Shown: positions 1,700-20,899 of the stretch, one piece after another
Numbering within the stretch: position 1 is the stretch's first letter
How the letters are laid out: each line of letters starts with the position of its first letter
Origin: Chara braunii
Taxonomy: Eukaryota > Plantae > Charophyceae
Length of the DNA stretch: 64,000 nt
Assembly: GCA_003427395.1 (NCBI GenBank)
Contig: BFEA01000011.1
Location: forward strand, 508,991-572,990
Direction: 5' to 3'
The notes under the pieces: generated by a model
What the model was told of the DNA's origin: nothing
The model's input: the letters and a program-made list of their open reading frames with translations, nothing else
Databases searched by the model: none
Position numbers and translations under genes: made by a program

Positions 1700-2723
1700 G
1701 TAGTTTATCGTAGGCCGGGTGTTCCTTTGCCTTTTCCATTATCTGTTTTGTAGCGGTGACCATTCTTGTGTCTCGCAATTGATCCCCTTATTAAGGATAT
1801 TTTTCTTAGTATTGTGCAAATGCATGTGAGTAGGTCATCTGTCGACCAGATGTTAGTGGGTTTTATTTTGAGTTGTTGGATGTTTAGAAGCGAATTATGT
1901 GAGAGTCATTGTAGCCTTGCTCCCTTATTGTCTTCAAATCTCACGTATAGGTCCTTGTAGGCCATTTTCAGGTTTTTCTAATGGCACACTGATGGTGGCC
2001 ATTGCCTCCGGTTCATAGTCGTTTGTGAGAAAATCCGTAACCTCGTGGACCCGTAATGCCCTTTCCCTTTGCATGTGCCAACCGTGCGATGTCATTCCCC
2101 CATAGGAAGGAGCATACGAGTCTTCTAAGTCTGCAGGTGCCTGTTCTTTTTTTGATCGGGAGAACCAGCACTTTGTCCCCCTCCGACATACTTTTGTGGT
2201 ACGGCACCTTCTCGATGAGGTGACGTATTTTTGACCGCTTTGAAAGTTGGTTGTCACTCGCCTGACTTCTTTGGAAATCGAATTCAGGTCGTGGGTGTAC
2301 CAACTATGCTAGGACACTTGTTAAGAAACTGTGCTTGCATGTGGATATTCTCCTACTTTTTGGTTTGCGCCTACAACAGTACGAGTCCTTCTCAGGGTTT
2401 CGCGGGGTTCTGCAGGTGTTGCTTTCACTTTGGGGAAAAGAGTCGCCTTCTCGAGTTGTACTTCACACCTATCAACCACTGCCCTGCGCCGCCTACAACC
2501 AATATCCATACGTCAGCAGCACGCCTCACAGGACTTCAGGAGCATGCCTTACAAAGCCAGGGGTTCTATGGCCGTTCATTTTCTGCCCTTGTCATTTGCT
2601 AACTACAAGTTGTAAGTTGTTAGTTGTCAATCGTCGGTAGTCAGCAACAAGTTGTCTGACATCGTTCCCGCAAAGATAGGGAACAACTTTGACAGGGTAG
2701 TTTACAAACACATTGCAGTGTCT
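1700..2723 (-). mobile_element. Probable degenerate 5'/ORF1 region of LINE A, interrupted by the Harbinger element; probably continues right of 19651
   Basis: Lies directly upstream of the APE domain on the same strand. Removing 2724-19651 joins ORF 19637-19918 (..TVEPQR) in frame to HCNVFVNYPVKV.. of ORF 2592-2855. Confidence 0.4.
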
Positions 2724-3042
2724 GGGGCTCGTTAGACACACCTCGGGCGAGTAATCCCCCAAGGAAAATTTCGTTCCACCTATTGTTGGGAATGAAAACG
2801 AAAAAAAAAAGTGAAAACATTTCCTTGGGGCGGGAAGTGCTCGGGCTACAACCATTTGGTGGCATTCCCCAAGGTCAACGTCTAGGGCTTGTTAGACACA
2901 CCTCGGGTGCGTAGTTCCCTGAGGAAAATTTCGTTCCACCTATCCTTGGGTATAGAAACGAAAAAAAAAGTGAAAATATTTCCTTGGGGAATCGTTGGGG
3001 CGCCCTCGGGCTACAACCTTTTGGTGGCATTCCCCAAGGTCC
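2721..3042 (+). repeat. Tandem 160-bp duplication of the Harbinger left terminus, including TSD and TIR
   Basis: tct-ggggctcgttagacacacctcggg...ccccaaggtc at 2721 recurs as tct-agggcttgttagacacacctcggg...ccccaaggtc at 2881. Confidence 0.85.
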
Positions 3043-3605
3043 CTTGGAGGTCAAGCATCCGCGACAATCGGAGCGGCGACGACACACATCGTCGGCAACA
3101 TAATTTTCGTCGGCTGGTCCAGTGGAGAGTGTACCGGCCACCACACAGACATCTTGGGTCGTCGACGTCCGTGTTCAAGGAACCTTGCACCAACGGTAAT
3201 CGTTGGTGGTCTACTGGCCTCCATGAAAATCTCCAACCGGTGTTCAACCTGGCCGTGCATGCCCGAAGGTGGAAAGGGGTCCAGCGGTCGACAAATTTGA
3301 ATACTTAGTTGAGGCCCCTTGCTTCGATTGCCCACTGTATTTCGCGACGGATAACGTTACAACGCGTTTGTCCCATGCTGTGGTATGTCGTTTGCAACCC
3401 TCTTCATTGCCGTTTGCTGGAGGTGTACCGTCGTCGTCCAGCTATTGCCTTTTCCCGTGTGCCTTTCATGACCGTCTTTTGAAGGCTGCCGCTGTTGATC
3501 CTGGTCATCCTTTTGCTTATCTTTGTCATCTTCTTCCCCGTCTGCATCCTCGACAGGGTGCCTGGACTTACACGCAAGAGGCGGTCTGCGAAGAAGGACG
3601 TCCGC

Positions 3606-5306
3606 ATGGACGGGCGGTAGGTGAAGAGCAAGTCTTCAGTGAACTACTCTAGAAGTCACCGTGCAGGCCACGGACCGACCCACAGTGCAAGGGTGTACGA
3701 TCACCCTGCATACCCGCACCTGCCACCGCACGAGCAACCTCTGCCCGATATGACAGATGAGGAGGAGGAAACACGGCCACGGACCGTGGCGATGGGGAAT
3801 GCGTCCACCCATGTGTGGGCGGGGAGCCGATTGTATGGGAGCCACGAGAGCACGTATCGACAATCGTACACCGAATTAGTGTAGAAGGCAGCGCGTGAAA
3901 ACAATGTCGATGACATCATGATTCTGTTTTACGGGTTTTCTAGTGGGAGCTCGTTCGCCGCCACACGGACTGTCCTCAACAACCCGCAACCCGACGATGA
4001 TGCTGGGCTAGTGACGGTGGTCGACCAATCTCCAAAGGATTAATTTGGAGGATGGAAGACATCGGATAATAGAAGGGATCCTTCGAGACTGCAGTCGTTG
4101 TCGGCGTCAGCAGCATGCGTTGCCTGCGGTCGCCCACAGTGGATGCAGTCTCCGTCTCTGATGGCGGGAGGTTCTAGCACGGGCCGGCGTGCACCTGAAT
4201 CCGGGGTGACGAACGCTGACTTTACGGGCGTGGGCGACGTTGGGATGGGAGGCAGGTGTGGGCGGAACAACGATGCGAGCTGCGTGGACAGCGAGAGGAG
4301 TCGATAACGCGGGGGGTGCAACGATTGCTCATGGGGGAGCAAGGCGCGAAGAAGGAGCCACCAGTGTTGGACGTGGACGATTATGAGGATGCCTACAACA
4401 ATGACGAACGAGAGGATGACGATGCCTGCTACGTTTCACCATTCAGGAATAAATCCAAGACATTTGCATTCATCAAGGGCCGTCGGGGGGAAAAAGTGGC
4501 GCCGGCGGGAAGCGAGGTTGAAGGCAACACAGAGGCGGGGGAGAGTGGACAAAACTTCTAGTCAGTCGAACAGATGGTCGCCCTCATCAGGATGAAGTGG
4601 GACCAGGATGCGCATGCAAGGGATGGGCTACGGGTACTCTGGCATGAAGACAAGGAAATGGAAGTGAGATGTTCACCAGAGTTTGACGAAGGTGGACATT
4701 GACAGATCAACAGACAAGTGCGGGAAGAAGTGGGACAACTTGATGTAGTAGTTCAAGAAGGTGCACCTGTTCCAGAGCGGGTCAGGGAAATGTGATTTCT
4801 TTCAATTGAGGGGGAAGGAGCATGGGTTTAATTTTGCCATGGATCGGGCTGTGTATGAGGAGATCAAGGGTCGACTGCGAAGGGTCACACCATACACCGG
4901 AAGAATGTCACCGACACAGGCAGTGTGGGTGGTGTGCAGCTGCCATTCGGGTCTTCTGGCGGTCTTAAATTTGTGGCTGATGGAGATGCAGGTGGCAACT
5001 GCAATGAGAAGACGATAGCTCCTCGAAAGGTTCTTCATCAACAATGGGTAGCCCTGGCGGATTCGGTAAGAGGAAGAGCATGAGGTAGTAGACTTTCTTG
5101 ATACAGTGCACGAAGAAGCACGAACGTTAATGGTGACGACGATGGAGAGCGCAAGTAAGAGACAATGCTCCATCCAAATGTGGCAGTGTGAAGCATTGGA
5201 AGGAGAGGTTGAGGTGCAGAAAAAGCAGTACGGGTCGTCAGACGAAGTGAGCAAGCTGATGAGTCATGCAATGTTGGAGATAGCGAAGGTTATTCGAGAG
5301 CGGTAG
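3606..5306 (+). pseudogene. Harbinger Myb/SANT-like (trihelix GT-type) DNA-binding protein, disrupted
   Basis: Across frames at ~4550-4870: F*SVEQMVALIRMKWDQD...MKTRKWK*DVHQSLTKVDIDRSTDKCGKKWDNLM**FKKVHLFQSGSGKCDFFQL...FNFAMDRAVYEEI. This follows the trihelix W..E/Q...LI...W..V...RS...C.KKW.NL pattern. C-terminal coiled-coil-like segment at 5106-5306. Start is approximate. Confidence 0.85.
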
Positions 5307-6399
5307 ACGAGGGGCTCTTGATCGGGCGGATAAAGATTTGGGACTGGCTGCTTGGCCTTCCCCGAGCGCTTCACGTTTGTCCACGTGGATGTCATGTTAT
5401 TGCTCGTCTTGCTGTCCACGAGCAAGAGAGTGCCCCTTCATGAGCGTGTCCATGATGTCATGATGGCTGCCTGTCTACCTTTACTGGGGTGGTGTCGCGC
5501 AACGTTGTTCGTGTGTTTCTCGCTTTTGTTCAATTGTTTTTTTTGTATTTTGTATTTGTAATTTGTAATGCAGATGACCATTAGTATGTATTTCGAATTG
5601 CGGCATACGATTGCAACACCCCCACCAATGTTAGTGGTGCTGATAAGAGCAGACACCACTAGCACCTGGGGAGAGGCTCCATCTATTGCTGGGGAGCATC
5701 ACCTGTTGTCGAGCGGGTCCAACGTCCCTTATACAGACTGAATTTGGGATACATAAAAAAAAATTGTGGAGTGTTCCTGCCAACATTGATTACCTTGGGA
5801 TCCAAGGGATTGACTGAGTAGAATATTGGAGGGAAGGGGAACCTCGTCACCCTGAGTTCGGCGCCAGATTCGCAGCTACACGCTAGTTCCTCCCTCCCCC
5901 TGAGCCATACTGAAATCATACTATCATCGCCTTTTTTTCAATTACAGACTGACTATTGAAGTAGAACAGAAAGGAGCACACTTGTGGTATGTCAGTATCA
6001 TTCTACACCAGACAGCCTGATCACTCGTAATTCCTTAGCGGCTACGTCCTGTTCCTTTGGATACCATTCTTCTAGGTACCCGTCCTCTCCATATGCTGAG
6101 TATCGCCCGTTCAGTCTGCTCCATACCATTGCATCATATCCACCATCGCCGGCTGCGAGCGTGGGAAGGAGTCGGGAAATTATGTGGCGGGTCGCATTGG
6201 GATCTCCTGGCCCACAGTAGTCAAGTCTCTGAAACAGATACGGTAGTCTCTTCTGAATTCCTATTGGTTGCCTTCTTGGGTGGGCTTGCCCTCCCATCTA
6301 ACAGATGCGATTCAACCCCCATTCTCAGTGTCCAACCAGTCTCCAGAAAATTGGTGAATTGCTTGTGTTACATCCTTTGTTGAATGATATAAGTCGAGT

Positions 6400-7782
6400 T
6401 GGATTTTATTTTTTTGCCAGTGAACTATGAGTTCTTGTTGAATGTGTTGCCTTATCATGTCTATTGCCTTTTCCCCCACTTATGCGGACCCCCTCCATAG
6501 CATGTATACAATGTTTCCTCTAGAGGGTCCACATGACCGCTCTGCTTCCTAACTTGAACATGTTGTTTTCAAAGGTATGTCAGTGGGGGAGGACCATGCC
6601 TCGCATAATATGGCCCTTCAATCCCATGGCCAGTGAGATTCAGTGCCCAGCTGGGTCCAGATCCTATCCTACCATCGCCATGTAAGAGCTGCCCATGACA
6701 TTGCATGAATATGTGCTCTATGGTTTCAAGGATTCTGGGGGGGGGAAAGGCAGTGTAGCATGACTTGCACCATAGTAATGCCCGCCCCTTCGACTTCAGG
6801 TATGTGCGATTTATCAACCAAAGGGCAGACAACGGTGTTCTATCTGCCATTGAAGAGAGGCCATCTTTGCAACCCTAGACCTTGTGGACGTGATCCATCG
6901 GATCGGGCGGATTGCCTCAGTCCCTACATTCAAGTGTGACCTCCATCGGCCCTTCACTATATCTTTTATATTCACCTTTGGTCGAAGCAGGCGATATATG
7001 GTCTTCACTAATAGAGTGTGTAGTTTTAGATCCGTCCCTGACCTGGGTTTTCGCATGGGGACCCATCGCCATTCGTCAGGGTCAAAAGGTAGCTTCATCA
7101 CGGGGGTGCTTGACTAATATGCGATTCAAACATCTTTATATGCAGCACACGTACCCTCTGAAGGTCTGCTGTTCTGCACCATCTGATCACATCTGGGCGG
7201 TACCGGGTGAGTTTATTTTACTTGTCTAAGTGGAAGAGGTTTACCAACGTTTCGCTTGTTCTGACCTCCACTACATTGCCTACACTTTCTGGATCCCCCG
7301 GGGCAGCTACCCAGTCCCTTTCTATTAGCCGTGGCCCTCTGCGCAGGATGCGCACCCAGTCAAGGGGGACTGCAGAGGTCAACAAATCAACGTTCTCCTC
7401 AATCTTGTGACGGTGCTTTAGTATGGTTCTCAGTTGTGGCCCCGTTTTCCAGTCACCCACTTCTATGTCGCATATGTCATTTATTGGGATTATGTCTTTT
7501 TTTACCCAACTGTTCCACAGAGTGTTCCAGTTGCGATACACCCTGTTGTACCGGTTTGTTATCCCCCTGTTCCCAAAAAGAGGCTAACGCATCACCTCCT
7601 CCCACCTGGTTGGTGGGGGTTGAACAGGTAGCGGGAGTTGGTGCCAGACCCTGATGACTCGGGTCCAGAAGTCGTCTTTGACCAGGTCCGAACGGGTTGT
7701 GTCTCGAGGTGAGTCTCGCTCTATACGGGGGCACTGTGGCACAGTCCAAAAGCGGTCTTTCAGCCAGGTTAGTGGGCTAACT
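6400..7782 (-). pseudogene. LINE B ORF2 C-terminal region with CCHC (zf-RVT-like) zinc finger
   Basis: WCKSC...ETIEHIFMQCH in ORF 6569-6850, followed by a VMWTL*RKH segment typical of L1/Tx1 C-termini. Confidence 0.8.
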
Positions 7783-9182
7783 CTGTATATCTTTTTAACG
7801 GAGAACGGGGGAATTAAACTCCCGTTGAATCCCGTTAAATTCAAAAAAATCCCGTTGAATTCGTGTTAAACTCGAAAATGGGCCGCTTCCGCTGTTTTCG
7901 GAAAAACGGAATTGATGCGTGGAGTCTGGAACACGTGGCCCTACGCAAAATATATATATATATATATATATTCATATATATATATATTATATTTTTTTAA
8001 ATAAATAAAAAATTAAAAATTCAACCCCTAAAGCATCTCCCATGCGCCCCCACATCCACCAACCCCCAACGCCCCAGTTATGTGTGTGTAGGTGTGCTGT
8101 GTGTGCGTGTATATGTGTATGTGTGTGCCTGCGCGTGAGAGTGTGTATGTGCATGAAGATAAATGTATGCGCACGTATTTGTGTATGTGTGTGTTTGTAA
8201 GTTTGTGTGTGTGTTGTGTGTGTGTGTGTGTGTGTGTGTGTTCGTGTGTGTGTGCATGATTGTTGGTGTGAGCGCCAGCAAGCTACTGCGCAACTCGGCT
8301 ATGGTTGCCTGCTCCTTCCTACTCGCCCGTGAGGCGTGTGAGTGCCAGCGAGCTATAGCGCGGCAACGCTTACGCATCATGCAGCCAGCACCCGAATGCC
8401 CAATGTGGAGGCAGGCCCTTTCCTATATCGAAGTGGCCTGCTTGTGTTCAGTCCCAGGAAGCTTCCAGTAGGGTCCGATAGCCTAAGGCCCAACACGAAC
8501 GAGACCAGGCCTTGGGCCTGAGCTGGTTGCATGCCCCCAACTGCCTTTGGCCTGTGTTTGGCCCAATACCCGTATCCAGCCCAGGACCTGCTTTCCATAC
8601 ATTCACACAGGCGGCCCAGGGCGTGGGTTTCCTCAACCAACTGAAGCCAGACTCACGTAACCTGCTACAGACCCAATTTTGTGTGTGTGTGTGTGTCTTT
8701 TTTTCCTGTTTTTAATTTGCTTTTTATGGTTTTGATTTTTTTAAAAATAGACGAAGTTCCAAAAAAATAAAATAAAAAGTGAATTGTTGTACATCTTTGA
8801 AAGATCTACAACCCTATATTTTTTATTTTTTTTTTTTTGGTTTTTGTTTTAGCCCTTAAAAAATCTGTGTGAAACCCAAAACAAAAACACTCGTTTCATT
8901 TTAGTTTTTGTTTTTTCATTGTGTGTTTATGTTTTTGATTTTTTTAAAATATATTTAAGAATAAAAAAATAAAAATAAAAATACAGGGTTGTAGTCCTAA
9001 AAAAAACCTACAACCCCATGTTTTTATTTTTATTTTTGGATAATTTTTAGCCCAGGAAAAAAATCATTCCAGACCCCGTTAATGCGCGTCCAACTCGCGT
9101 TTGAACGGGAGTTTAACGGGAATTCAACGCGCGTTAAATTTTCAACGCGGAACCCGCGTTGAATTCAAAATCGGACACACAA
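7783..9182. mobile_element. Non-autonomous DNA transposon, 8-bp TSD (hAT-like), inserted in LINE B ORF2
   Basis: TSD ggctaact at 7775-7782 and 9183-9190. Excision restores the LINE frame (KQIARLTPQAPQE|VSPLTWLKDRFW). Subterminal cccgttgaa/ttcaacgcg motif clusters, internal hairpins and a (TG)n tract. TIRs are degenerate (ctgtat.../...cacaa). Confidence 0.85.
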
Positions 9183-9189
9183 GGCTAAC

Positions 9190-10960
9190 TTCTTGCGGTG
9201 CCTGTGGGGTAAGTCTGGCTATCTGTTTAAGCGTCAGGGCTTGCCATGGGAGGTGCTCGGTAAAAGGCAATCTCCTAACCCATTGGATAGTTAATGCTAT
9301 GATGGGTATCTGGGTACAGGATCCCCAGGCCCCTTTTGTCCTTGGGTTGGATCATCGATGACCAGGTTACCCTGCTAATAACATTCGAGAGCTCACCATT
9401 ACCTCTCCAAAGTAGGACCACTAATTGCCTTTTTAGCGATCGGACGACCTCCTTGCTGAGGGTCCAAATTGCAGATTTATACCACAAGGTCGTTAGTACT
9501 ACACTATTGTCCGTGAGCGCTCTGCCAATAAGGGAGGTGTGTCGGTCTTTCCTGTTGGTTACAATTTTCTAGAACAGGCTTAAGGATTCACTCATCATTT
9601 GATGCGGGTTTACACAATGCCGTCAACCTAATTCCCAACACTCTAAGCGGGGTCGTATCCGGGAGCCATTTGACCCGTGGCAGCTTCGACAGGCGCACCC
9701 CTTGATGGTGGATCCACCACCCCAAGGTCTTGTTTCCCCAGTTGACAGTTATGTCTGAGACTGCTGTAAATCGGTCAAATAATCTCCTAATCTCTTTCAT
9801 GTTTGTTGTCGTGGCATCTATCATAAGAGTCAAGTCGTCCGCAAACATCGAGCAAACAGGGACCATGTCTTCCGGGATAGCAGAGATCTGCAGTCTCCTC
9901 AAGTCTTTATTGGCGCGGAGGTTCGCTGCCAGCGCTTCCATCACTATGATGAAGAGGAAGGGTGCCAAAGGATCCCCTTGGCGAACCGATCGTTGCAGCG
10001 GAAAAGACGGCGATATCCTGTCATTGACTCGGACACACGTGGTGGCACTATGATGTAGTACTTCGGTTCAACATCGGAAAACTGGTCCAATGTTCTTTTT
10101 TTTCATACATTTGTCTAATAAAAGTCAGTCCACGCGGTCATATGTTTTTTCAAAGTCAATGAAGACTACAACCGCATTCTTCTTATGTTGCCTTGTTAAT
10201 TTGAGAAACTAATTAATTAGGAGAATATTATTTTGAATCCTGCGTCCTTTGACGAAACCGGTCTGCGTTGGGTGAATAATATCGTTCAGGACCGGGATTG
10301 GTCGGTTTGCCAGGGCTAATGCAAATATTTTATAGACAACTGTGAGGAACGTTATCGGCCGGTAGTTCTTGATATTATGCAACAGGGTGAGCATCCCTTG
10401 CCCCACCAACTCCCCCATCCACCCTGTGTCCCACACATGGAATCCATGAGGTCCTGGGCCATTTGGGTCAAGAAGGTCTCCCAGAATTCCTTGGGAAATC
10501 CATCGACGCCCGGGGTCTTCTCTTCATCCATCTGCATCATCGCCGTCCAGATTTCCTCTTTGGACGGAGGATGATCCAGATCTGTTTGTTGCTGGCCCGT
10601 CAGGGTTTTTTCCAGTGGTTTCAATAAATCTTCTATTTCCTTCTCCCTGCCGTTCCTCTCCCGTTGGGCAGATCTTGAAGTGAACAGATCCTTGAAGAAT
10701 AGTAATCCATGAGGTACGGGGCCAATTGAGTCCAAAACGTCTCCCAGAATTCCTTGAAAAATCCATCAGTGCCCGGGGTCTTCTCTTTATCCATCTGTAT
10801 CATCGCCGTCCAGATTTCCTCCTTGAACAGGGGACGATCCGGATCCTGTTTGTTGCTGGCTCATCAGGGTCTTTTCCAATGGTTTCAAGAAATCTTCTAT
10901 TTCCTTCTCCCTCACGTTCCTCTCCCGCTGGGCACATGTTGAAGTGAACAGATCATTGAA
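9190..10960 (-). pseudogene. LINE B ORF2 reverse transcriptase domain (frameshifted)
   Basis: KTPGVDGFPKEFW, NYRPITFLTVVYKIFA, QTGFVKGRRIQNNIL, VFIDFEK, RQGDPLAPFLFIIVME, SMFADDLTL, LRVLGI, PKDKRGLGI. Confidence 0.92.
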
Positions 10961-10962
10961 AG
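10441..10962. repeat. Diverged ~265-bp tandem duplication inside LINE B ORF2
   Basis: 10441-10698 recurs at ~10706-10962. Both copies encode DLFTS..AQRERN.REKEIED.LKPLEKTL. Confidence 0.85.
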
Positions 10963-11439
10963 ACCTGGCTATCTGCAAGCAGTGGGGGGAGGAGGTGACA
11001 ATGTCTTGGTGTCCGGTTTGTGGATCGTATAGCGCTTCTATGGTTGTTCAGTGCGCACGTGCTCGAGCCATACTAAAAAAAATTTTGTCCATTGTTCCTT
11101 CCGTTAGTAACTTTGTCAGTCTACCTCTTATTCGTGTTCCCTCACAACGTTGTGTGACAAAGGTGTGAAATCGTTGTTGTAGCCTTCGAACCTCTGAACA
11201 ATCTTTTGGCTGTGTGTGCGGTATCTGTTGGACATTATGCGAGTTGTTTGGTTGATCTTGGTGCTCCAATTGCTGCAGTTGTTGGTGAACTTCCGTCTTC
11301 TGTTGATGTTTTCTAATAGCTAAGAGTTTGGAATATTCTTGACATTTTTTACCCAGATAGAACAGTCCGTTGTTAAATCAGTCTACATCTGCTGAATTTG
11401 TTGTTGTTGTGTGTGCCAGAATGCCCAACAGTCCTTAAT

Positions 11440-12290
11440 TTAATTATGGAAGGTATTCTCTTTTAAGATAGAGGTATTGAGTTTGTAAAAGTCAAGTCCA
11501 CGGTCAGGTTTATGTCGGAACGACAAAATGACCATACACATTTTATGATAAAGGCCCGGGTAAGGACTGACAGGTAAGATTGCTGCTAGGAGCAGCGATC
11601 CTGCCATATCTTCTGATATCAGAGTCAAGTCTATCCGAAATCTCGACTAACCCTCAGTACCAGTCTTCCGTAGGCACGAATAGAACCTGGTATTCGGGTT
11701 TAGCCGTCGGAAGGACTCAAGAACTTTTAGAGACAGATATAACTCGTGGATTGTCCGCTCATCCTCTTCCACATACATCGGGGCAGGGGACGGTGTTCAC
11801 CATCTGTTCATCCATCAATCTGGGGCTGTGTTGCAGTCCCCTGCTATGATGACCAGAACCCCATCCAGGATTTGCGTCTTTATGTTCTAAAAAAAGGTTC
11901 TCCTCTCGACTACAGTGTTGGGGGCGTAGACACACAATGTGCATAAAATTTCAATTTCCAGCGTGACCAGGATGGACACCCATCGTCCCCCCTCCTGATC
12001 CACCATCCAATGCACTGGGTCCGCCCGGGACTCGGGGGGAATCCAGATGGCTACCCCTGCACTACCCGGTTCTTGGGGCATGGGCTTTGAAGGCCTTGTA
12101 TGTCCATATCATTTTGTGGATACGATTATGTTCCGGAGTGTCCATCAGGTGTGTTTACTGAACAGACACTATATCTGGCCAGTTCCTACCTCCCACCCCA
12201 CTCATTGAGTCCCAGATTGCATTTTGTTTTTCAGGTTTGCATGAGGCCAAGCCATTCACATTTAGGGACCTCATGTCCACATCTGTTGCT
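11440..12290 (-). pseudogene. LINE B ORF2 APE endonuclease domain (frameshifted)
   Basis: MRSLNVNGLASCKPEK, DIVSVQ, GSAGVAIWI, LCVYAPN, YHKMCMV...GLDFYKLNTSILK. Clearly homologous to the LINE A APE. Confidence 0.85.
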
Positions 12291-12536
12291 CGCCTGCGTT
12301 GGTTCCGGATACGGTCCTTCCCATACACCGCTTTAACCGGGTCAATCTTGCCCGAATTGTTCATATGTTCTTTGTATTACATAGCATGTTGTTGCCTCTT
12401 AACAACCCACTGCAGCAGATCTCATTCCCTGTCTGCCGTTCCCACCAAGGGGCCCAACCTGAGGAGGGCTCATAGACATTTTCTAACGTCCTGTTCAGTC
12501 CAGGTGTCACTGTGCCCGATTTTGGTTGTCCGTAGC

Positions 12537-12862
12537 TTCAGTAGCTGGGCATGAGTATCTCACTGTGCTACTTTGTTGGGGCTTGTTGTGATCGAGGTTA
12601 TTGCCTGTGCCCCTATTGATAAACTTTCTGTAATATGGCCTTCTAAATGCATTTGCAGAGTGTCGGTCGCTGCCTCAGATGTGTTATTATGTGGCTCCGC
12701 TTCAGTAGTTGGGCATGAGTGTTCGATGTGCTATTTTGTTGAGGCTTGTTGTGATCGATGTTATTGCCTGTGCCCTTGGTGATGAACTTTTTGTAACGTG
12801 GCCATCTAAATGCATATGCAGAATGCCGACCGGTACCTCAGATGTGTTGTTTTGTGGCGCTG
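12537..12862. repeat. Diverged ~164-bp tandem duplication in the LINE B ORF1 region
   Basis: ttcagtag(c/t)tgggcatgagt...cctcagatgtgtt occurs at 12537 and 12701. Confidence 0.8.
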
Positions 12863-14411
12863 CCCAGAATGATGACCAGCCATGTAGCGTGACCCTCCCC
12901 TGCCTGCCATTCTCTACTGGAGACAGTCCCACCTCCCATTTTTCGTATTTCTTTCGAACAGGGATGAGCATAACTATCCGCAGATTGATTTTTTTGATTT
13001 CATTGTGTTTTATTTTACTAGTCTCGGTCCGTCCGCTGTCTGCCTCTCTCTTTGGCTCTCTCGCTGACTCTCTCTCAAACTCTCTCCCTCCCTCTCTCTC
13101 TCTCTTTCTCTCTCTCATATCCCGTATGGCGTCCCATGAGGACATCGTGTTTCGGTGTGTGTGTGTGAGAATAAATGATATGAACGACAAGTGGCGGAAG
13201 TCTGTTTTTGGCGTAGTCTCATGTGATTACACCGTGTATTTCACCTTCACCACAAAATGGTTGCGGTGTCCGAAGCTTGGATGACCACGTCCTGTGTAAT
13301 GACATACCAAGCCGTCGGAAAATGGTTGTCTCTGCGTAAAGGTGTCATCTTTAATGTTGTACTCCTTTGGAATATGAATATCCGAGAATTTTGCAAATTA
13401 CTAACTTGGGAATTCATGCGCACCTTCAGACCACAAAACTTTTGGTTTCGTTTAATCATCTATAATGTCTTCTAAAATTACACATTTGTTGGAAATAGAT
13501 GCCTTAGGTAATTACACATCTGTTAGAATTCCACAAACGCAGGCCACAACGAATGTGCATGAGTGTGTTTTTCGTCGTGTTGGGTGATGTGGCGAGCCGG
13601 TCGGAATCGAGGGTGGGTGGTGGTGTTCGGGGTTCGATTTGTGGATGGTGTGTGTGGGTGCATGCCTTGTTTAGGTCACGTTGGGGGGGGGGAGAGGGGG
13701 GGAGTTGAAGGTCTGTTGCCTATTTCCGTGGGGGTGTTAGGGGCAGTAATGGGGGCCCCGACAGGGAGGGGGTTGGGTGCCATTTGCGGATGCTGCCCTC
13801 CGAGGACCGTTAGCCTTAGAGAATGACGAACACCTTGGAAGGTTGACGACGGTGGACCAGGCGTCCTTTCCAACCTTTCGTAGGGCGTGGAGTGGACGAC
13901 GATGGAGCCAGTAAAAAGCACGGGCAGCAGACGTGTCACTGTCAGTTGTCCTTGTCGCTCGATTGAAACGCACGGGCGGAGTGTTGGGAGGTCCTCCTCG
14001 CCCATCGCCCTTGCTCACGCATATGCACTACATTTTCTCAAGATTATCCGCATCAGCAGCCGTGACCTCCTTCCTACCTTCATTGACGCCTCTCGACTGT
14101 CTCGCCTCGCCTCCTTTTTCGTCGCCGCCTCCATATTGCCGTGTATCCACATTAAGGCATAGTGCGTGCAATCGTCTACCGGCTACGAGGACAGTGCCGC
14201 GGGCCTAGCCTGTCGTGCCCACGATCGCGTCGCCTTTCCATCCCACAACTTCCACACAGACTACTCCAGGTGTAGCCTTCTGCCAGGACTTTCAGTCGAC
14301 CGCCGTCAACCTTTTTGTCCCGCCGCGCCGCGCCGCACAAATGTCGAAAATGATCACCTTCCTCCTTCCTCCTCTCGCGTCTCATGATTGTTGTTTTCCA
14401 CTCCACTTTCA

Positions 14412-14563
14412 TCGTCGATTGATCATTGTCTACCAACCGCGATACTCACGTTCTGCATGCTATTCTTCGGCTCCAGTTTGGAGTGCTCGTCGATTGATCA
14501 TCGTCTACCAACCGCGATACTCACGTTCTGCATGCTATTCTCCGGCGCCAGTTTGGAGTGCTC
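14412..14563. repeat. ~75-bp direct tandem duplication upstream of the Harbinger middle ORF
   Basis: tcgtcgattgatcat(t/c)gtctaccaaccgcgatactcacgttctgcatgctattct..ggc.ccagtttggagtgctc occurs twice. Confidence 0.85.
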
Positions 14564-14788
14564 CACGAAGGTGAATTTCGCTAGGGGCAGTCGTCGACGT
14601 CCACGTCGCCAACCCAACAGCCGCATTTTACGCAGATTGCCACATCAGCGGCCGCGTGGAAGATGAGCCCGGTTGATAAGTGATTGCAGGCTCATTGCCA
14701 ACGTGTTCACCGCCCTTTTGTGGAAGGTGCCCACTCGCGGAGACGTCACCAACACGATACTGCTCTTGTCGCTGTAGTCATCTTCAGC

Positions 14789-16493
14789 ATGTCATCTCGC
14801 AGCGGTGGTCATGGCAAGAAGAGGGACAGTTGCGTAGGTGATGTGCTGGCGCTGGAGAAGAGTGGAGGGCATGCCGCGAAGAAGAGGAAGGCTGTTGTGG
14901 GGGGCCCTTCCATCAGAGGAGGCTTGAGGGAAGACGTGTGGGTTAGGGATCCAACAACTTTCGATGACGATGATGAATTCAAGGAGAAGGCGACGGTGGG
15001 AGCTGCGAGAAAATTGTCGAAGCGCGCAGAAGGCGGGGTCCGAATAAATGACGGGGGGCGTCAAGGTATTCAACAACCCCGCGGTGGGGGGTTCCGTGGT
15101 GGGAATGATGGAGTCATCGACGTGGACGTCGTTGCTGTGCCGGCGGAGGTCGTAGTGAAGGCAGGGGCTTAGACGGGCCTTGCGGGGGAAATGCCACAAC
15201 AACACGTGTCACTAGGCCACTAGAGGGGCAGCAGTTTGGATGGGGTCCTTCTAGCCCCACCACACCACGGGGACATACACTTTCGGAGGTGGGGGGGTGT
15301 GAATGGAGCGTTGCAAGGGAGCGGCCAAGGAGCGTAGCGCACGCCCCTGGCGAATGCACAAAGGGGTGTCGTGGCTTGGTCTTCGAGAGGGGGGGTGGCT
15401 GCAATGCTCCGGGAAAGTCGTGGGTATGGCGATGACGACGAGCCTGTGGTGAACAGGCAGCGGCGAGGGCATGTAAGAGAGGGGATCGACGCACGAACCA
15501 AACTTTGGGTAGATGATTTGTGCTTATGGAACGAGACAGAGGGTAATGGCCTGTTTAAGTTGATCCAGGAGGCGCGACTGCATTTGGTGGCCATCGCCAA
15601 TGGAGTTGCGCCTCCCGACATCTGTCGGAATATAGTAATCCTGCACAACAGCATCTCCCAACACAAAATCGACGACGAGTCGGAGCTGAAGGCGGCGAAG
15701 GACAGGGGGTAGAAAGTGTCGAGCATCGCCTTGTGCGTCATTCATGGGTGGATCTTCAAGCCCACACGTCGGTCGCGGGGCTGCCGCGCGACTTATGGAT
15801 ACGTGCTCAACCACGTGGCGACGGTGACCACCTGTGCCATGTGGTTTGGAGAGGACTGATGCAAGTGGTGGCAATGCCATGGTTTTCCACGGAAAGCTGA
15901 AGATGGATATGAGACTCCCTATTTGGCTCATCGACACGCACATCTAGGACAGACACGAGGACGACGAGTTGTCGTCGTATCAAGAGGTGAGCCTGCAGCG
16001 GCTTGTGGGGGCTTTCATGAGCGCCGTCACTCTGGCGGAGGGGATAGATGGTGGCTGCGTCTCGTACGAGAGGTTGAAAAACATGGTAGAGACTATGAGG
16101 CTTCTACTTGCAGCGACGATGTGACTCATGCGGATGAGCGGGGATACTTTGCGTTCGTATTTCGACGCGTCGTTCTTTTTTCAACTCACAGCAGAACCCA
16201 CACTGGTGGCCTCCATGCATCACTCCTTCAACGCTCGTGGGCATATTGTTTAAGCAGCCACATTCGTCACGGAGAGAATCAGCAAGGTTGCCATGACGTT
16301 CGCGGACCCTCCTGTCCACATCCCGGATCGGGCATCTTGCGGCATCACTTTTGAATATGAAGCCACTTGGATGTCGCCCATGCATGTGAAAAAGTTGGAT
16401 GGATTGGGAACAGGCCCCCCAGAGGAAGAAGAAGATGAACCGGCGGTGCAGACAAAGCTGGAGGGGGGTAGTCATTTGAAGGTGGCGTGGTGA
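14789..16493 (+). pseudogene. Harbinger-internal third ORF, unknown protein (~550 codons, disrupted)
   Basis: Protein-like segments join across stops and frameshifts: MSSRSGGHGKKR..KKRK (NLS-like), RTKLWVDDLCLWNETEGNGLFKLIQEARLHLVAIA, IALCVIHGWIFK, KMDMRLPIWLID, YQEVSLQRLVGAF, YERLKNMVETMRLLLAATM*LMRMSGD, DPPVHIPDRASCG. Lies inside the TIRs. Confidence 0.7.
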
Positions 16494-17699
16494 GACGACG
16501 GCGGCGGATGGTTTGTGAGAGTGGGCTGGGGCGTACGTGGAGGTTGTCGTCTTGCAAAGGAGGGAAGATGGCTGGCGGTCGGTTCATCAAGCTGTAGGTG
16601 TATGGGTGGTGCTTGCACGTTTTCTCTTTCGGCTTTTGTTAGCAGGGTGGAGGAACGCGCCGATGTGCATTCGTCCTATTTTCATATCGCCTTTTGTGTA
16701 GGATGCGGTTTAACGGGGTTGGCTGCCATCTGTGATGGGGAAAATGTAATGATCAGTTTGTTTTAGTGCATGGTGCAAGGATGGAAAGGGGGGTTTTGTT
16801 GCACCATGTCTTATTTCAGAACTATGCATGTGCTGTTCGGTGCCGCCACAACGAACTTTGATTTTTGTTACCGTACACTTGTCATCCAAATGCGAGTGTG
16901 ATGGTTGCTCTTTGTGAATTGGTGGCTGCCCTCCCACCGTTTTGCTTTGTTATGGAAATATTTGAAGACACCCTTTGTAATGCATGCCTTCCTTCAGTGT
17001 TGATTGCGCATCCGTGTCTTTTGCTTAATTATTTGAAACGCCTCCCGCAAGAACACAACAGATACAACTTCACGAAAGGAAACAAACAAAATATACAAAA
17101 GAAAAAGAACGGAAAAATAATTATTAAGAAATAATGAGAAACTTGGAACAATACATTCACTGCATGTAACCCATCAGAAGAGCACGAACGACGAGCGCAC
17201 CATTCTCACACGAGAGCGGCCAACACACAGCACGCCACGTTATCACAGAGGTTGACACACGACCGTAAGCAAAAGGTCACACATTTCGTTGCGAAAAAAC
17301 AGACAATCTCTAATAAACGAGGCCCGTAGATAAGACTTCATAGAAATACAAAAATGACATCGACAACGACACGAGCCAACGACTACGATGTCAGAATAGC
17401 ACTCCACGAACGACGGTAGCTCATCCTAATGATGATAAAACAAAAAATTACAAAAAAGACAATATATCAGATGCACACGTCAATCTTCTTCCGACAACAA
17501 CCCAGTCCCGAAAGGAAGAACAACAAACGCTTTGATAAATTGACATGGTGAAAGACCTTCGCCCACCGTATGCCGCCACATGGACGCAGGGGTGACGACC
17601 ATTGCTGGCCACGTCGGAGCACCATTGGGGACGCATGCAGTGACGACGACTGGGGTGGTGTTGTGTATATCCGTTCGCCCACGCCAGAGATCTGATGCC

Positions 17700-19170
17700 G
17701 CCGTCACAACCAACCTACGACAGATGGTCGTCACTGCCCACTCATCCGCTCCGCCAATGCGTCCCTCAGAATGAGCGCATCTCCCTTCGCCATTTCCATG
17801 CACACTGGCTTGAGGGGGCGTTGGGATCCAGTGAACGACGCACCTCGTTTGCGTCCACCTCCCACAGCAGACTGTCGTCGAAAGGGATGCCAATGTCGAT
17901 GAGTATGTTGTGTAGAATGCAGATGGTGACAAACTGCAGCGACAACCTCTCGATGTTCGTCTTGTGTGACTGCAAGAATAGCCTCCACATCCCTTTCAGC
18001 CTGTTGAAAACCCTTCAACTGCCCCCCTCACGGTCTTTTGCTTGTTGTCGAAGCAAAACTCCGACGGGTGTTCACTACTGCAGCCATACGAAACCGCTAT
18101 CCATTCCGAGAGGGGTTAACCATTGTCGCCCAACAGATAATCGTTGGTCTGCATTTCAAAGGGGAGCATCACAGGTGGTCCCGTAAAAAGCTCACGCGGC
18201 TCGGCACGTGCCCATAGACTGAATCCTCACGTCCTGTCAGCTTCTTGTATAGCCGATGAAGACGTCCATTACACGCGAGTTCAGATTGACGACCACCTGC
18301 GCGACTACTAAGAAACGTCGTTTCCTATCGTAGTAGTCCTCGCAGGGGGTATTCGCCGGTTTATCAATGTAGATACGAGTGCAGTCGATACACCCATGGC
18401 AGTTCGGGAAGCCTTTGTCAGTGAAAGCGCTTAGGACGACTGACTTCTGCACCCTCGTCGGTCATGAAATCTTATTCTGGTACACTATCAGCAACGCCCC
18501 AGTTACGTCCCGCACCGCCACCAATCCTGAAGATTCGCCGATGCCGAAGTTGCACATGCCACTCTCGTACGTGAAAGTGTAGGACGACCGACTTCTGCAC
18601 CCCCGTCGGCCATGAAATCTTCTCCCGGTACATTGTCAGGAACCCCGCAGTTACGTCTCCCCCGGGGCCCACCTGTACAATGCATAAGCGATGATATGAT
18701 CAGGTTGTATGGGTTCCTTTTAGAACTTCACACGCTGCTGCTGGAAGGGCGACAAAGCTTCCGCAATCTCCCGAAAGACGCGTGGCGACATGCGTAGCTT
18801 GTCCCGAAAGTAATCTTTCGTGGCGTCGTCGCATTGCCGCAGATCCTCCCATGTCCCCGAGTCCTTTTCATCCACCACCTGGGCGTCGCTCAGGGTAAAA
18901 CTCCGCAACTCATGGTGCAGCACACCTGAACGACGACGTCGCAGATGGGTGGTGGTGTCCAAGCGTTCCACCGCCATAGACTGCATCGTCTTTTCCCTCT
19001 GTGCACAGATCTGCGCTTTCATTGTCCCCTCAATCCTCTCCAGCTGACAATGGAGAAGCACGACGTTAACGATTGTTGCCACTGTCGTTCTCTTCGCCGT
19101 GCTCAATTTTGAACGCTCCTCACATTGTTGGCGACATCCATCGCCACAAAGGGTGCGGAAATGACCATCG
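17700..19170 (-). pseudogene. Harbinger DDE transposase (HARBI1/DDE_Tnp_4-like), disrupted
   Basis: YFRDKLRMSPRVFREIAEAL, GFPNCHGCIDCTRIYI, DYYDRKRRFLVVAQVVVNLNSRVMDVFIG, VTICILHNILID. Includes an ~80-bp internal duplication (18432-18512 / 18580-18660). Confidence 0.9.
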
Positions 19171-20899
19171 CCAACGCCCACAAACTCCACCGACTCTCCA
19201 CTGGATGACGAAAACGCACCGCTTGACAAGAGGGACCGGCGTTGTGTTGCAAGTCTACACGACGCTTTCCGCCACTCTCCGTGCAGATGGGCACTAAGGA
19301 CAACCGCGATGGCACATGCCGATCTGCATTCACCCCAACAACGTCATTCGAAATTTGAATTTCGAACCTGGACTTTCGGGCATTTTATTTTTTCATTTTT
19401 GGACGGCTGCCGCCGCCATTCGAATTTTCCCTAGACCACGCCGTCCACACTGACAAAAGCCCATGGACCACTTCCAGCCCCCCTCCCGCCTCTCCCTCCT
19501 CCCCCCCCCGTGGCCAGCGAGCCCGTGGCAGCCACTCCTCGGGCGACCTTTCCAAGGACGAGTGGAATGACGCCCGAAAATATCTTGGGTCACTCAAAGG
19601 AAAACCTCTTGGGCCCAAGGTCGACCCGAGGATTGTCTAACGAGCCCCTCTTTGTGGCTCAACAGTTCTAGCTGTGTCAGATGGCATAGCTTCTCCTAAA
19701 GGCACTTCATTTCGTAATGGCCGAGTCGGCGTTTCATGAAGAAGTCGGACGGGCAATCTTCTGCCTGACTCACAGGCTTGACATTCCAAAGTTGTGGCAG
19801 CGGCTTGCAACCATGGGGAAAAAAATGTCATTATAAGGTTGTCAAACCTTGGGCAGCCTCCATCGGACATTAAGGAAATTTGTGGCACTGGCCTTATGCT
19901 GGTCAGAGGATGGTGCAACGTGAAAGGAGAGGGGAAGGGCTCAAAGGAGCACCAAGCTCAAATTTGCTCCAGGCCTCGCTCCACTACTCTCCACATGCAC
20001 AAAAAGACAAAAAATATGCAATGTATCTTTCCATGTAAAAGGGGAGGAGTCCATCTCATTTTGCACATTTGGAGAGTAGTGGAGTGAGACCTTATAGAAA
20101 ATGCTCCAATGCAAAGGCACAGATGTTGAACAGGGCACGCTTAGGCTAGGACTTTGTGAACTGAATATCTTCTGAGCAAGCTGCCAGAATGGAACGTCCT
20201 AGTGCGTGAAGAAGTCCTTTGGAATTTCTCCTGGCCAGCTATTTGTGCATTTTTAAGATCTCACGTGTGGAAATAGGAGTTGGGTCCTTCGGTACATCCA
20301 TTAGAAATTGGACGAATGATATGAAAGATTAGCAATCCCCTCCCCCCCCCAAAAAAAAAAAAATTAAAAAAAAAATGATTGGCTCATATGTACAGTCTGA
20401 AAGAGGACTATTGTCTAATGGAATACTAAGACTAGGACTGACTTAGTGAATATTGGTGAAATCGCGTCAGATTCAACATTATGCTGAGCCGCAGTGACAT
20501 TGTAGCCAAATTTGCAAGGGTTCCTGTTGGACTACTAAGTTCGATCTTTGGAGTCATCGCTATTCTGAGTGGGGCCAAAGTTTGTCGAAATTGCTATTAT
20601 CTTTCCATGATCATAAAGTGTGGTCGCTATTTTCTATGTGGGTCCCCGAGAGTAGCCTCTAATCCATCTACGAAGAATCACGCATGCTTTGGGTGAGCCT
20701 CCGATCCTTGGGAGGCCGAAACGAAACGATGTCCGCCGATGAGAGTTATCAACGGCGGCCGTCGGCGGGCCCAACCCTCGATGTCTTAGGAACATATATA
20801 TTGAATTATTTTCCCATTTTTCCAATAGTGGGAAAGGTAGTGGTGGTTTAATACTGAAGTTTGCTTTATGTAAAAAAAAAATCAAAGAGGCTAGGATTC

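Follow-up and report, generated by a model that had tools for sequence, protein, structure and literature searches.

Gene remnants at the locus

The DNA examined here is a stretch of 64,000 nucleotides from the stonewort Chara braunii (contig BFEA01000011.1, positions 508,991 to 572,990), the whole of which is referred to below as the window. Between positions 2724 and 19648 the window contains a unit of 16.9 kb that is bounded by inverted ends and that carries the remnants of three genes of a PIF/Harbinger DNA transposon. These consist of a Myb/SANT gene and a third gene, both on the plus strand, and a transposase gene on the minus strand, with a retroelement situated between the first two of them. 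No long open reading frame (ORF) is left inside this unit, and the three gene remnants were read from three-frame translations. A first-pass annotation of this DNA had described three ORF remnants within the unit, and a Myb/trihelix gene, a third ORF and a transposase were all found. The features of the unit are listed below, where TIR and TSD stand for terminal inverted repeat and target-site duplication, and L001 to L011 are related loci from the Chara genome.

2721–2723: left TSD, TCT, read directly and matching 19649–19651
2724–2747, plus strand: left TIR, 15 bp perfect (2724–2738), 22 of 24 bp when extended
2884–3045, plus strand: inner tandem copy of the left terminus of about 160 bp, with a degenerate TIR AGGGCTTGTTAGACA and the subterminal motif TTCCACCTATCCTTGG at 2934–2949
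3606–5303, plus strand: Myb/SANT pseudogene of the trihelix type (Pfam Myb_DNA-bind_4 family), colinear with Chara PF13837 proteins
6000–12500, minus strand: remnant of a retroelement resembling a long interspersed nuclear element (LINE), with RVT_1; minimal coding limits only
14412–14563, plus strand: two tandem repeats of 75–77 bp, 96% identical, just upstream of the third ORF
14789–16493, plus strand: third-gene pseudogene of about 568 codons, colinear with the 548-aa protein P0007
17743–19106, minus strand: PIF/Harbinger DDE transposase pseudogene with a DDE_Tnp_4 match and an internal tandem duplication (18421–18509 / 18571–18657)
19552–19567, minus strand: subterminal motif TTCCACTCGTCCTTGG, mirror of 2934–2949, a candidate binding site
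19625–19648, minus strand: right TIR, with homology to the right-hand ends of L003 and L004
19649–19651: right TSD, TCT, matching the left one

The sequence GGGGCTCGTTAGACA is present without any mismatch at 2724–2738 on the plus strand and at 19634–19648 on the minus strand, and only about 0.09 chance matches to this 15-mer are expected in the window at two or fewer mismatches. In an extended alignment of the two ends 22 of 24 bases agree, and TCT is located directly outside both of them, so that the perfect TIRs and the TCT duplication reported in the first-pass annotation are both seen. The left TIR region has homology to the left ends of two loci, L005 and L007; in L003 the homologous sequence lies just inside the TIR. 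The left terminus is followed by a tandem copy of itself (2720–2876 and 2880–3041, 83% identical), and the homology of the window to L003 and L005 runs inward from the inner of these copies. This duplication (2720–3045) takes in the TCT together with the preceding G; its outer copy has the perfect TIR and its inner copy a TIR with two mismatches but a better subterminal motif. It may have originated by aberrant gap repair or by the insertion of a solo terminus at the end of the element. The subterminal motif also occurs at both ends of L007, although within the window alone it is statistically weak.

The Myb remnant was recognized in tblastn searches with the Myb part of the Chara protein P0058 (E about 1e-63) and by its similarity to the L007 Myb protein (E = 1.5e-39), which itself matches PF13837. 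The motifs of the trihelix are visible at about 4562–4900, and the remnant reads, in part, SVEQMVALIRMKWDQD and, further on, DRSTDKCGKKWDNLM followed by two stops and FKKVHLFQSGSGKCDFFQL. It has at least eight stops, and its fragments taken alone are too broken to give a Pfam match. The trihelix-like Myb gene of the first-pass annotation is therefore present, but it is the normal second protein of a Harbinger element and not an extra feature. The third ORF is interrupted by eight stops in frame and by a single frameshift near 15876. Its region 14789–16415 aligns with residues 1–530 of P0007 (E about 1e-107, summed), and it is colinear with the family of this protein over the basic N-terminal motif, the helical core of about 300 residues and the acidic tail.

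In the transposase remnant, the piece 18240–18461 (minus strand) matches DDE_Tnp_4 (PF13359) with E = 6.7e-6 and a score of 26.3 bits, above the Pfam cut-off of 24.8. The remnant, which is 48% identical to the intact transposase of L007, shows the motifs GFPNCHGCIDCTRIYI, YLLGDNG and RVFNRLKGMWR, and it is broken by at least six stops, by frameshifts and by the internal duplication listed above. Many PIF/Harbinger transposases have GAIDGTH at the first catalytic motif. The window has GCIDCTR here (18380–18400) and the consensus of 35 Chara transposases is GCIDCTH; as read from these sequences, the window motif is near the norm of the Chara family, with its Asp retained, and the catalytic residue is not lost at this position. 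A Pfam scan of 30 stop-free pieces of the window gave weak or no matches only, because this copy is broken. All three genes of the window copy are dead.

Gene order and termini in related loci

As the window copy is dead, the case for a three-gene element is carried by the family to which it belongs. Eleven loci were fetched from the Chara assembly, eight of them seeded by proteins of the third family and three by transposases. The order Myb (plus), third gene (plus) and transposase (minus) was observed in six of these loci (L001, L002, L003, L004, L007, and L010), which are diverged from one another, their proteins being 30–70% identical. In three of the six, homologous ends and 3-bp TSDs enclose all three genes, and related copies that are uninterrupted measure 8.9–9.4 kb. 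The best copy is L007, where each of the three genes is present as a single ORF.

L007: 8.9 kb; ends GGGCCTCGTTAGACA, perfect over 22 bp; TSD TTA
L003: ends GGGGCTCGTTCGACA; TSD TTT
L002: ends GGGTCTTGTTAGAAA; TSD TAT
L007 Myb ORF: 507 aa, PF13837 (E = 1.6e-10)
L007 third ORF: 669 aa
L007 transposase: 406 aa, PF13359 (E = 4.6e-18) and PF04827 (E = 1e-7)

Tandem repeats of 161–177 bp (L007:9800–10146) overlap the start of the third ORF in this copy and probably explain the longer and atypical N-terminus of its product (P0046, 669 aa), which is without the MSSRG...KKRK start. Just outside the TIRs of L002 there is a 96-bp inverted repeat (8558–8653 / 18138–18230, 90%), which may belong to a different inverted-repeat element into which this Harbinger inserted. 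The linkage of the genes is also seen in the annotated genome, in which at least 13 genes of the third family are neighbours, by locus tag, of a transposase gene (e.g., CBR_g19573/19572, g31592/31591, and g8234/8235), and in one model the third protein and the transposase are fused.

The first-pass annotation had proposed a large Harbinger lineage with an extra dedicated gene, and the shared order in six loci, together with the purifying selection described below, upholds this proposal. The same annotation had suggested looking for the middle ORF in other copies with these ends, and in L007, L003, and L002 it is present in the same order and orientation. However, an alternative way to account for such an arrangement is that a single gene spans both ORFs, in which case splicing would make the helical domain the C-terminal end of a long ORF1 protein, and the element would be an ordinary two-gene Harbinger with a large ORF1. 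The two genes share a strand and are only 1.3–3.9 kb apart, and in 25 of the 75 Chara models of the third family a Myb_DNA-bind_4 part is fused with the third protein (e.g., P0056, P0058, and P0014). Nonetheless, the Myb ORF has its own stop in the best copies (L007, 8686–8688; L005, 8129–8131), the third ORF opens with a Met in an MSSRG-GRGK start that is kept across diverged lineages and in the window, and many annotated models hold the two genes apart. The fused models look like joins made by the gene finder, as there are also models in which the third protein is joined to a reverse transcriptase, to a tRNA methyltransferase or to the transposase. A single gene is thus improbable in our estimation.

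It was also considered that the middle ORF could be a passenger, either an independent nested element or a host fragment that was captured once and has no role. DNA transposons do capture host fragments, the third ORF resembles nothing known, and many other insertions and duplications are present in the window copy. However, the third gene occupies the same position and orientation in the six diverged copies, it experiences purifying selection similar in kind to that of the transposase, and no homologue that could be a donor gene was found outside Chara. An independent element should have termini of its own, as the first-pass annotation had pointed out, and in L007 neither an inverted repeat nor a duplication brackets the third gene, with no TIR or TSD around it. 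A copy with these ends from which the third gene is missing is known from one locus: a 5.9-kb element in L011 (9408–15347, TSD TGT), which is 88–94% identical to L007 and lacks the L007 interval 7882–12871. Because this interval also holds the DNA-binding half of the Myb gene, the L011 element is, from the alignment with L007, an ordinary internal-deletion derivative of an L007-like element, and it does not refute the proposed lineage. (It has an intact transposase of 427 aa and a foreign insert of about 2 kb in the 5' part of the Myb gene.) The passenger explanation is already largely refuted, and we assign it a very low probability.

Lastly, the window unit could be a chance pairing of the ends of two elements, with the Myb and third genes supplied by one and the transposase by the other. 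The unit has a length of 16.9 kb and is heavily rearranged, its left end is duplicated in tandem, and small elements that share its ends are frequent in the vicinity in the Chara genome. Against this, the TCT duplication matches at the two ends of the unit, the gene content and order are equal to those of the compact relatives of 8.9–9.4 kb that have a single pair of TIRs, and each terminus of the unit is homologous to its counterpart in these relatives. Of the explanations considered, chance pairing is the least credible. The small elements include a 456-bp miniature inverted-repeat transposable element (MITE) at L010:7105–7560 (TSD AAG), a few kb from a full-length copy, and a non-autonomous element of 2.6 kb at L011:3804–6451 (TSD AGA), likewise a few kb away; both belong to the same TIR family.

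The third protein and the reading of the window copy

An exhaustive phmmer search with the window piece 15338–15709 (124 aa) of the third ORF gave 55 cluster representatives (best E = 5.5e-41), and a profile built from 30 representatives recovered 75 proteins from 5.8 billion, all from Chara braunii. When 20 further representatives were looked up, 19 were from Chara braunii and the other was a translated satellite. The annotated family thus comprises more than 75 proteins, of which P0007 (548 aa) is a full-length member (the full-length relatives range from 450 to 1200 aa), and every real match is from Chara braunii; no homologue that could be a donor gene was found outside Chara. The only non-Chara match (P0021/P0108, from an ENA contig of 170 kb) was found to be spurious, since it consists of 11–20 tandem 62-residue units, i.e., a translated 186-bp satellite, and gave no BLASTP match to P0007. 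It had obtained E = 5.5e-20 only by the summing of weak repeats, which advises caution with HMMER matches made up of multiple stretches.

The N-terminus of the third protein is conserved across the lineages and in the window, where MSSRG-GRGK is followed by KKGRH, then by KKRK, and then by an acidic DEEWV stretch. The basic part of this pattern resembles a bipartite nuclear localization signal and may function as one. It is followed by a variable linker, a conserved core of about 300 residues and an acidic tail. In an AlphaFold model based upon 64 sequences (model m73d9316b29a7), the core was predicted to be all-helical (mean predicted local distance difference test (pLDDT) score 74) with a four-helix bundle at its end, while the model of full-length P0007 was poor (pLDDT 51).

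The third protein could not be assigned to any described family or fold. Pfam gave no match for the window pieces of the third ORF, and for 30 family members it gave nothing except the fused domains. The best result in PDB sequence-profile searches was SNF5 (E = 0.11), which covered the low-complexity N-terminal part and was rejected. With Foldseek, both models matched only generic helical bundles (best E = 0.34); the VIA fold search gave best Z values of 8.2–8.6, which lie inside the noise range for helical proteins, and the Atlas fold search gave template modelling (TM) scores of no more than 0.40, with nothing usable for P0046 in the ESM Atlas. Cytomegalovirus IE1, a nuclear antagonist of intrinsic silencing, aligned with the C-terminal bundle (core residues about 177–295) over about 105 residues with Z values of 7.3–8.6 and a root-mean-square deviation of about 3–3.5; such values fall inside the noise range of helical proteins, and the alignment was not counted. 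Profile comparison indicated no relation between the third protein and the transposase (probability 0.1%). The comparison with the Myb protein gave no evidence of paralogy, and it is confounded by the fused Myb-third models contained in alignment A3.

Evidence regarding selection was obtained from five loci. Over open core segments, the pairwise ratios of nonsynonymous to synonymous substitution rates (dN/dS) for the third gene were 0.17–0.53, with bootstrap 95% upper limits of no more than 0.69, and those for the transposase were 0.11–0.26 in most pairs; these ratios were calculated by the simple NG86 method on open segments of partly decayed copies, and dS was saturated for the distant pairs. 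The direction of the result is clear, viz. that the third gene evolved under constraint while it was carried in the element. Selection on a gene borne by a transposon is expected only if the copies that lose it propagate less well, and from this a role of the third protein in serving the element is inferred.

In addition to the limits of the dN/dS estimates, several observations weigh against a three-gene lineage with an integral third gene. A fully intact triple of genes was seen in none of the fetched loci, and the third ORF of L007 stops 45 codons before the usual end of the family and has an atypical N-terminus. Five of the 11 loci are without all three genes (L005, L006, L008, L009, and L011). 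There are assembly gaps in or beside the element in the first four of these, and in L006 a transposase gene is annotated at the following locus tag. No copy more than 80% identical to the window element, i.e., from its own subfamily, was recovered. For the third protein, there was no match above noise in the Pfam, PDB-sequence, Foldseek, VIA or Atlas searches, and a complex prediction for the transposase and the third-protein core scored 0.01, in a run where alignments were unused and the fold of the partner was uncertain, which gives no indication either way about binding. With these points taken into account, we consider it very probable that the window unit is an old, dead copy of a three-gene PIF/Harbinger lineage, of which the third gene is an integral part kept by selection.

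The full-length elements of this lineage are about 9 kb in length, with the Myb and third genes on one strand and the DDE transposase converging upon them from the other end. In the window copy a retroelement has inserted between the Myb and third genes, and all three genes have become pseudogenes. The third protein would be a nuclear accessory factor that the element makes for its own propagation.

The retroelement is identified by RVT_1 matches on the minus strand at 9591–10067 (E = 1.2e-8) and 10212–10523 (E = 2.9e-4). Two further features, a Cys/His motif of the C-terminal part (near 6700) and a start that resembles an endonuclease (near 12300), were recognized by eye only, and because the endonuclease pieces gave no Pfam match, the name LINE depends upon the reverse transcriptase and these by-eye motifs. 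The exact ends of the retroelement were not found. The nested LINE of the first-pass annotation is thus confirmed in its reverse transcriptase but not in its endonuclease or its exact ends, and for this reason the length of about 9 kb that had been given for the unit without it, although plausible in view of the uninterrupted relatives, is approximate only. The coding region of the retroelement contains a 257-bp tandem duplication (10441–10960, 88%), tandem repeats of 160 bp lie close to what is presumed to be its 5' end (12535–12858), and it is interrupted by a block of microsatellite and low-complexity sequence (7900–9100). Elsewhere in the window, the segments 58572–59015 and 59913–60092 match the fused Chara model P0011 in its reverse-transcriptase part, with 46–49% identity. 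They are separated by about 900 bp, which suggests that an insertion has divided a second retroelement.

Comparison with known transposons

Canonical PIF/Harbinger elements encode two proteins (PMC2836001, PMC13668399). The Chara lineage shares with such elements (maize PIF, rice Ping/Pong and zebrafish Harbinger3_DR) a transposase with the DDE_Tnp_4 (PF13359)/Plant_tran (PF04827) domain, which is seen in the window piece and in L007, and a separate Myb/SANT-trihelix protein, which is indicated by colinearity in the window and by the PF13837 match in L007. Also shared are short TIRs, a 3-bp target duplication, and the occurrence of internal-deletion and Tourist-like MITE derivatives with the same ends. 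The TIRs are 15–22 bp long with the pattern GGG[GC]CTCGTT[AC]GACA, which is common to the L010 MITE and the 2.6-kb element of L011. Duplications of 3 bp were found in seven elements (TCT in the window, and TTA, TGT, TTT, TAT, AAG, and AGA). However, the classic TWA consensus fits only some of the copies, with TTA (L007, and perhaps L010) and TAT (L002), and in contrast to the canonical elements the Chara duplications are not limited to it, TCT, TGT, TTT, AAG, and TAT occurring beside TTA. The main difference from the two-gene coding capacity is the third conserved gene, of about 550 codons, which lies between the Myb gene and the transposase gene in the window and in the six related loci. This gene does not remove the element from PIF/Harbinger, as the superfamily is defined by its transposase. 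At about 9 kb, the Chara element is larger than typical two-gene Harbingers. In the literature searched, which left most subscription journals and Repbase outside its scope, no published account of a Chara Harbinger or of a Harbinger with three or extra ORFs was found.

Extra genes are known from DNA transposons of the Mutator superfamily. The maize element MuDR encodes the mudrA transposase and the helper mudrB, whose role in reinsertion is experimental. The Chara lineage may be compared with MuDR in that an orphan gene restricted to a lineage and without recognizable domains lies beside the transposase and would aid the cycle of the element. However, MuDR is a Mutator and not a PIF/Harbinger element, and there is no relation in sequence or fold between MuDR and the Chara third protein, whose role would be comparable only by analogy. 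VANDAL21/Hiun of Arabidopsis encodes VANA, VANB, and VANC, of which VANC is an anti-silencing factor that removes silencing marks from the element's own copies. By analogy, the Chara element would likewise be a three-gene DNA transposon with one extra, fast-evolving and family-specific protein that serves the element. However, VANDAL21 also belongs to the Mutator superfamily, it has no detectable similarity to the Chara third protein, and anti-silencing is just one of the roles that the latter may have.

Domesticated pairs of Harbinger transposase and Myb proteins readily work with chromatin complexes (PMC4671723, PMC5339849), and a chromatin-directed third partner is therefore conceivable. 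These pairs (ALP1/ALP2, HDP1/HDP2, and HARBI1/NAIF1) are immobile host genes without TIRs, whereas the Chara genes are present in mobile, multi-copy elements with TIRs and TSDs. With respect to the function of the third protein, we lean, tentatively, toward a role in helping the transposase/Myb machinery, in assembly, import or reinsertion. A role in countering host silencing or engaging chromatin, which is considered because of the analogy with VANC and the chromatin partners of the domesticated pairs, would be rather less likely, and the remaining chance is that the protein does something else. An even chance may be given to the more complete proposal that the third gene encodes a needed, nuclear, all-helical accessory protein, which either completes the transposase-Myb machinery or acts in anti-silencing, which was born in the stoneworts, and which is the first known addition of this kind to PIF/Harbinger.

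By itself, the window copy adds nothing functional and is one more dead member of its family. The family, however, is a sizeable part of the history of the Chara genome; transposase genes of this type number in the hundreds there, with 323 relatives at E ≤ 1e-10 in a protein search, and the best 120 of them were all from Chara. Chara is positioned close to the origin of land plants, and PIF/Harbinger elements are the textbook example of two-protein DNA transposons as well as the source of several domesticated chromatin regulators in both plants and animals. The retention under selection of a third protein across deep divergence implies a requirement beyond the two-protein model, which may lie in the chemistry of transposition, in nuclear delivery or in the evasion of silencing.

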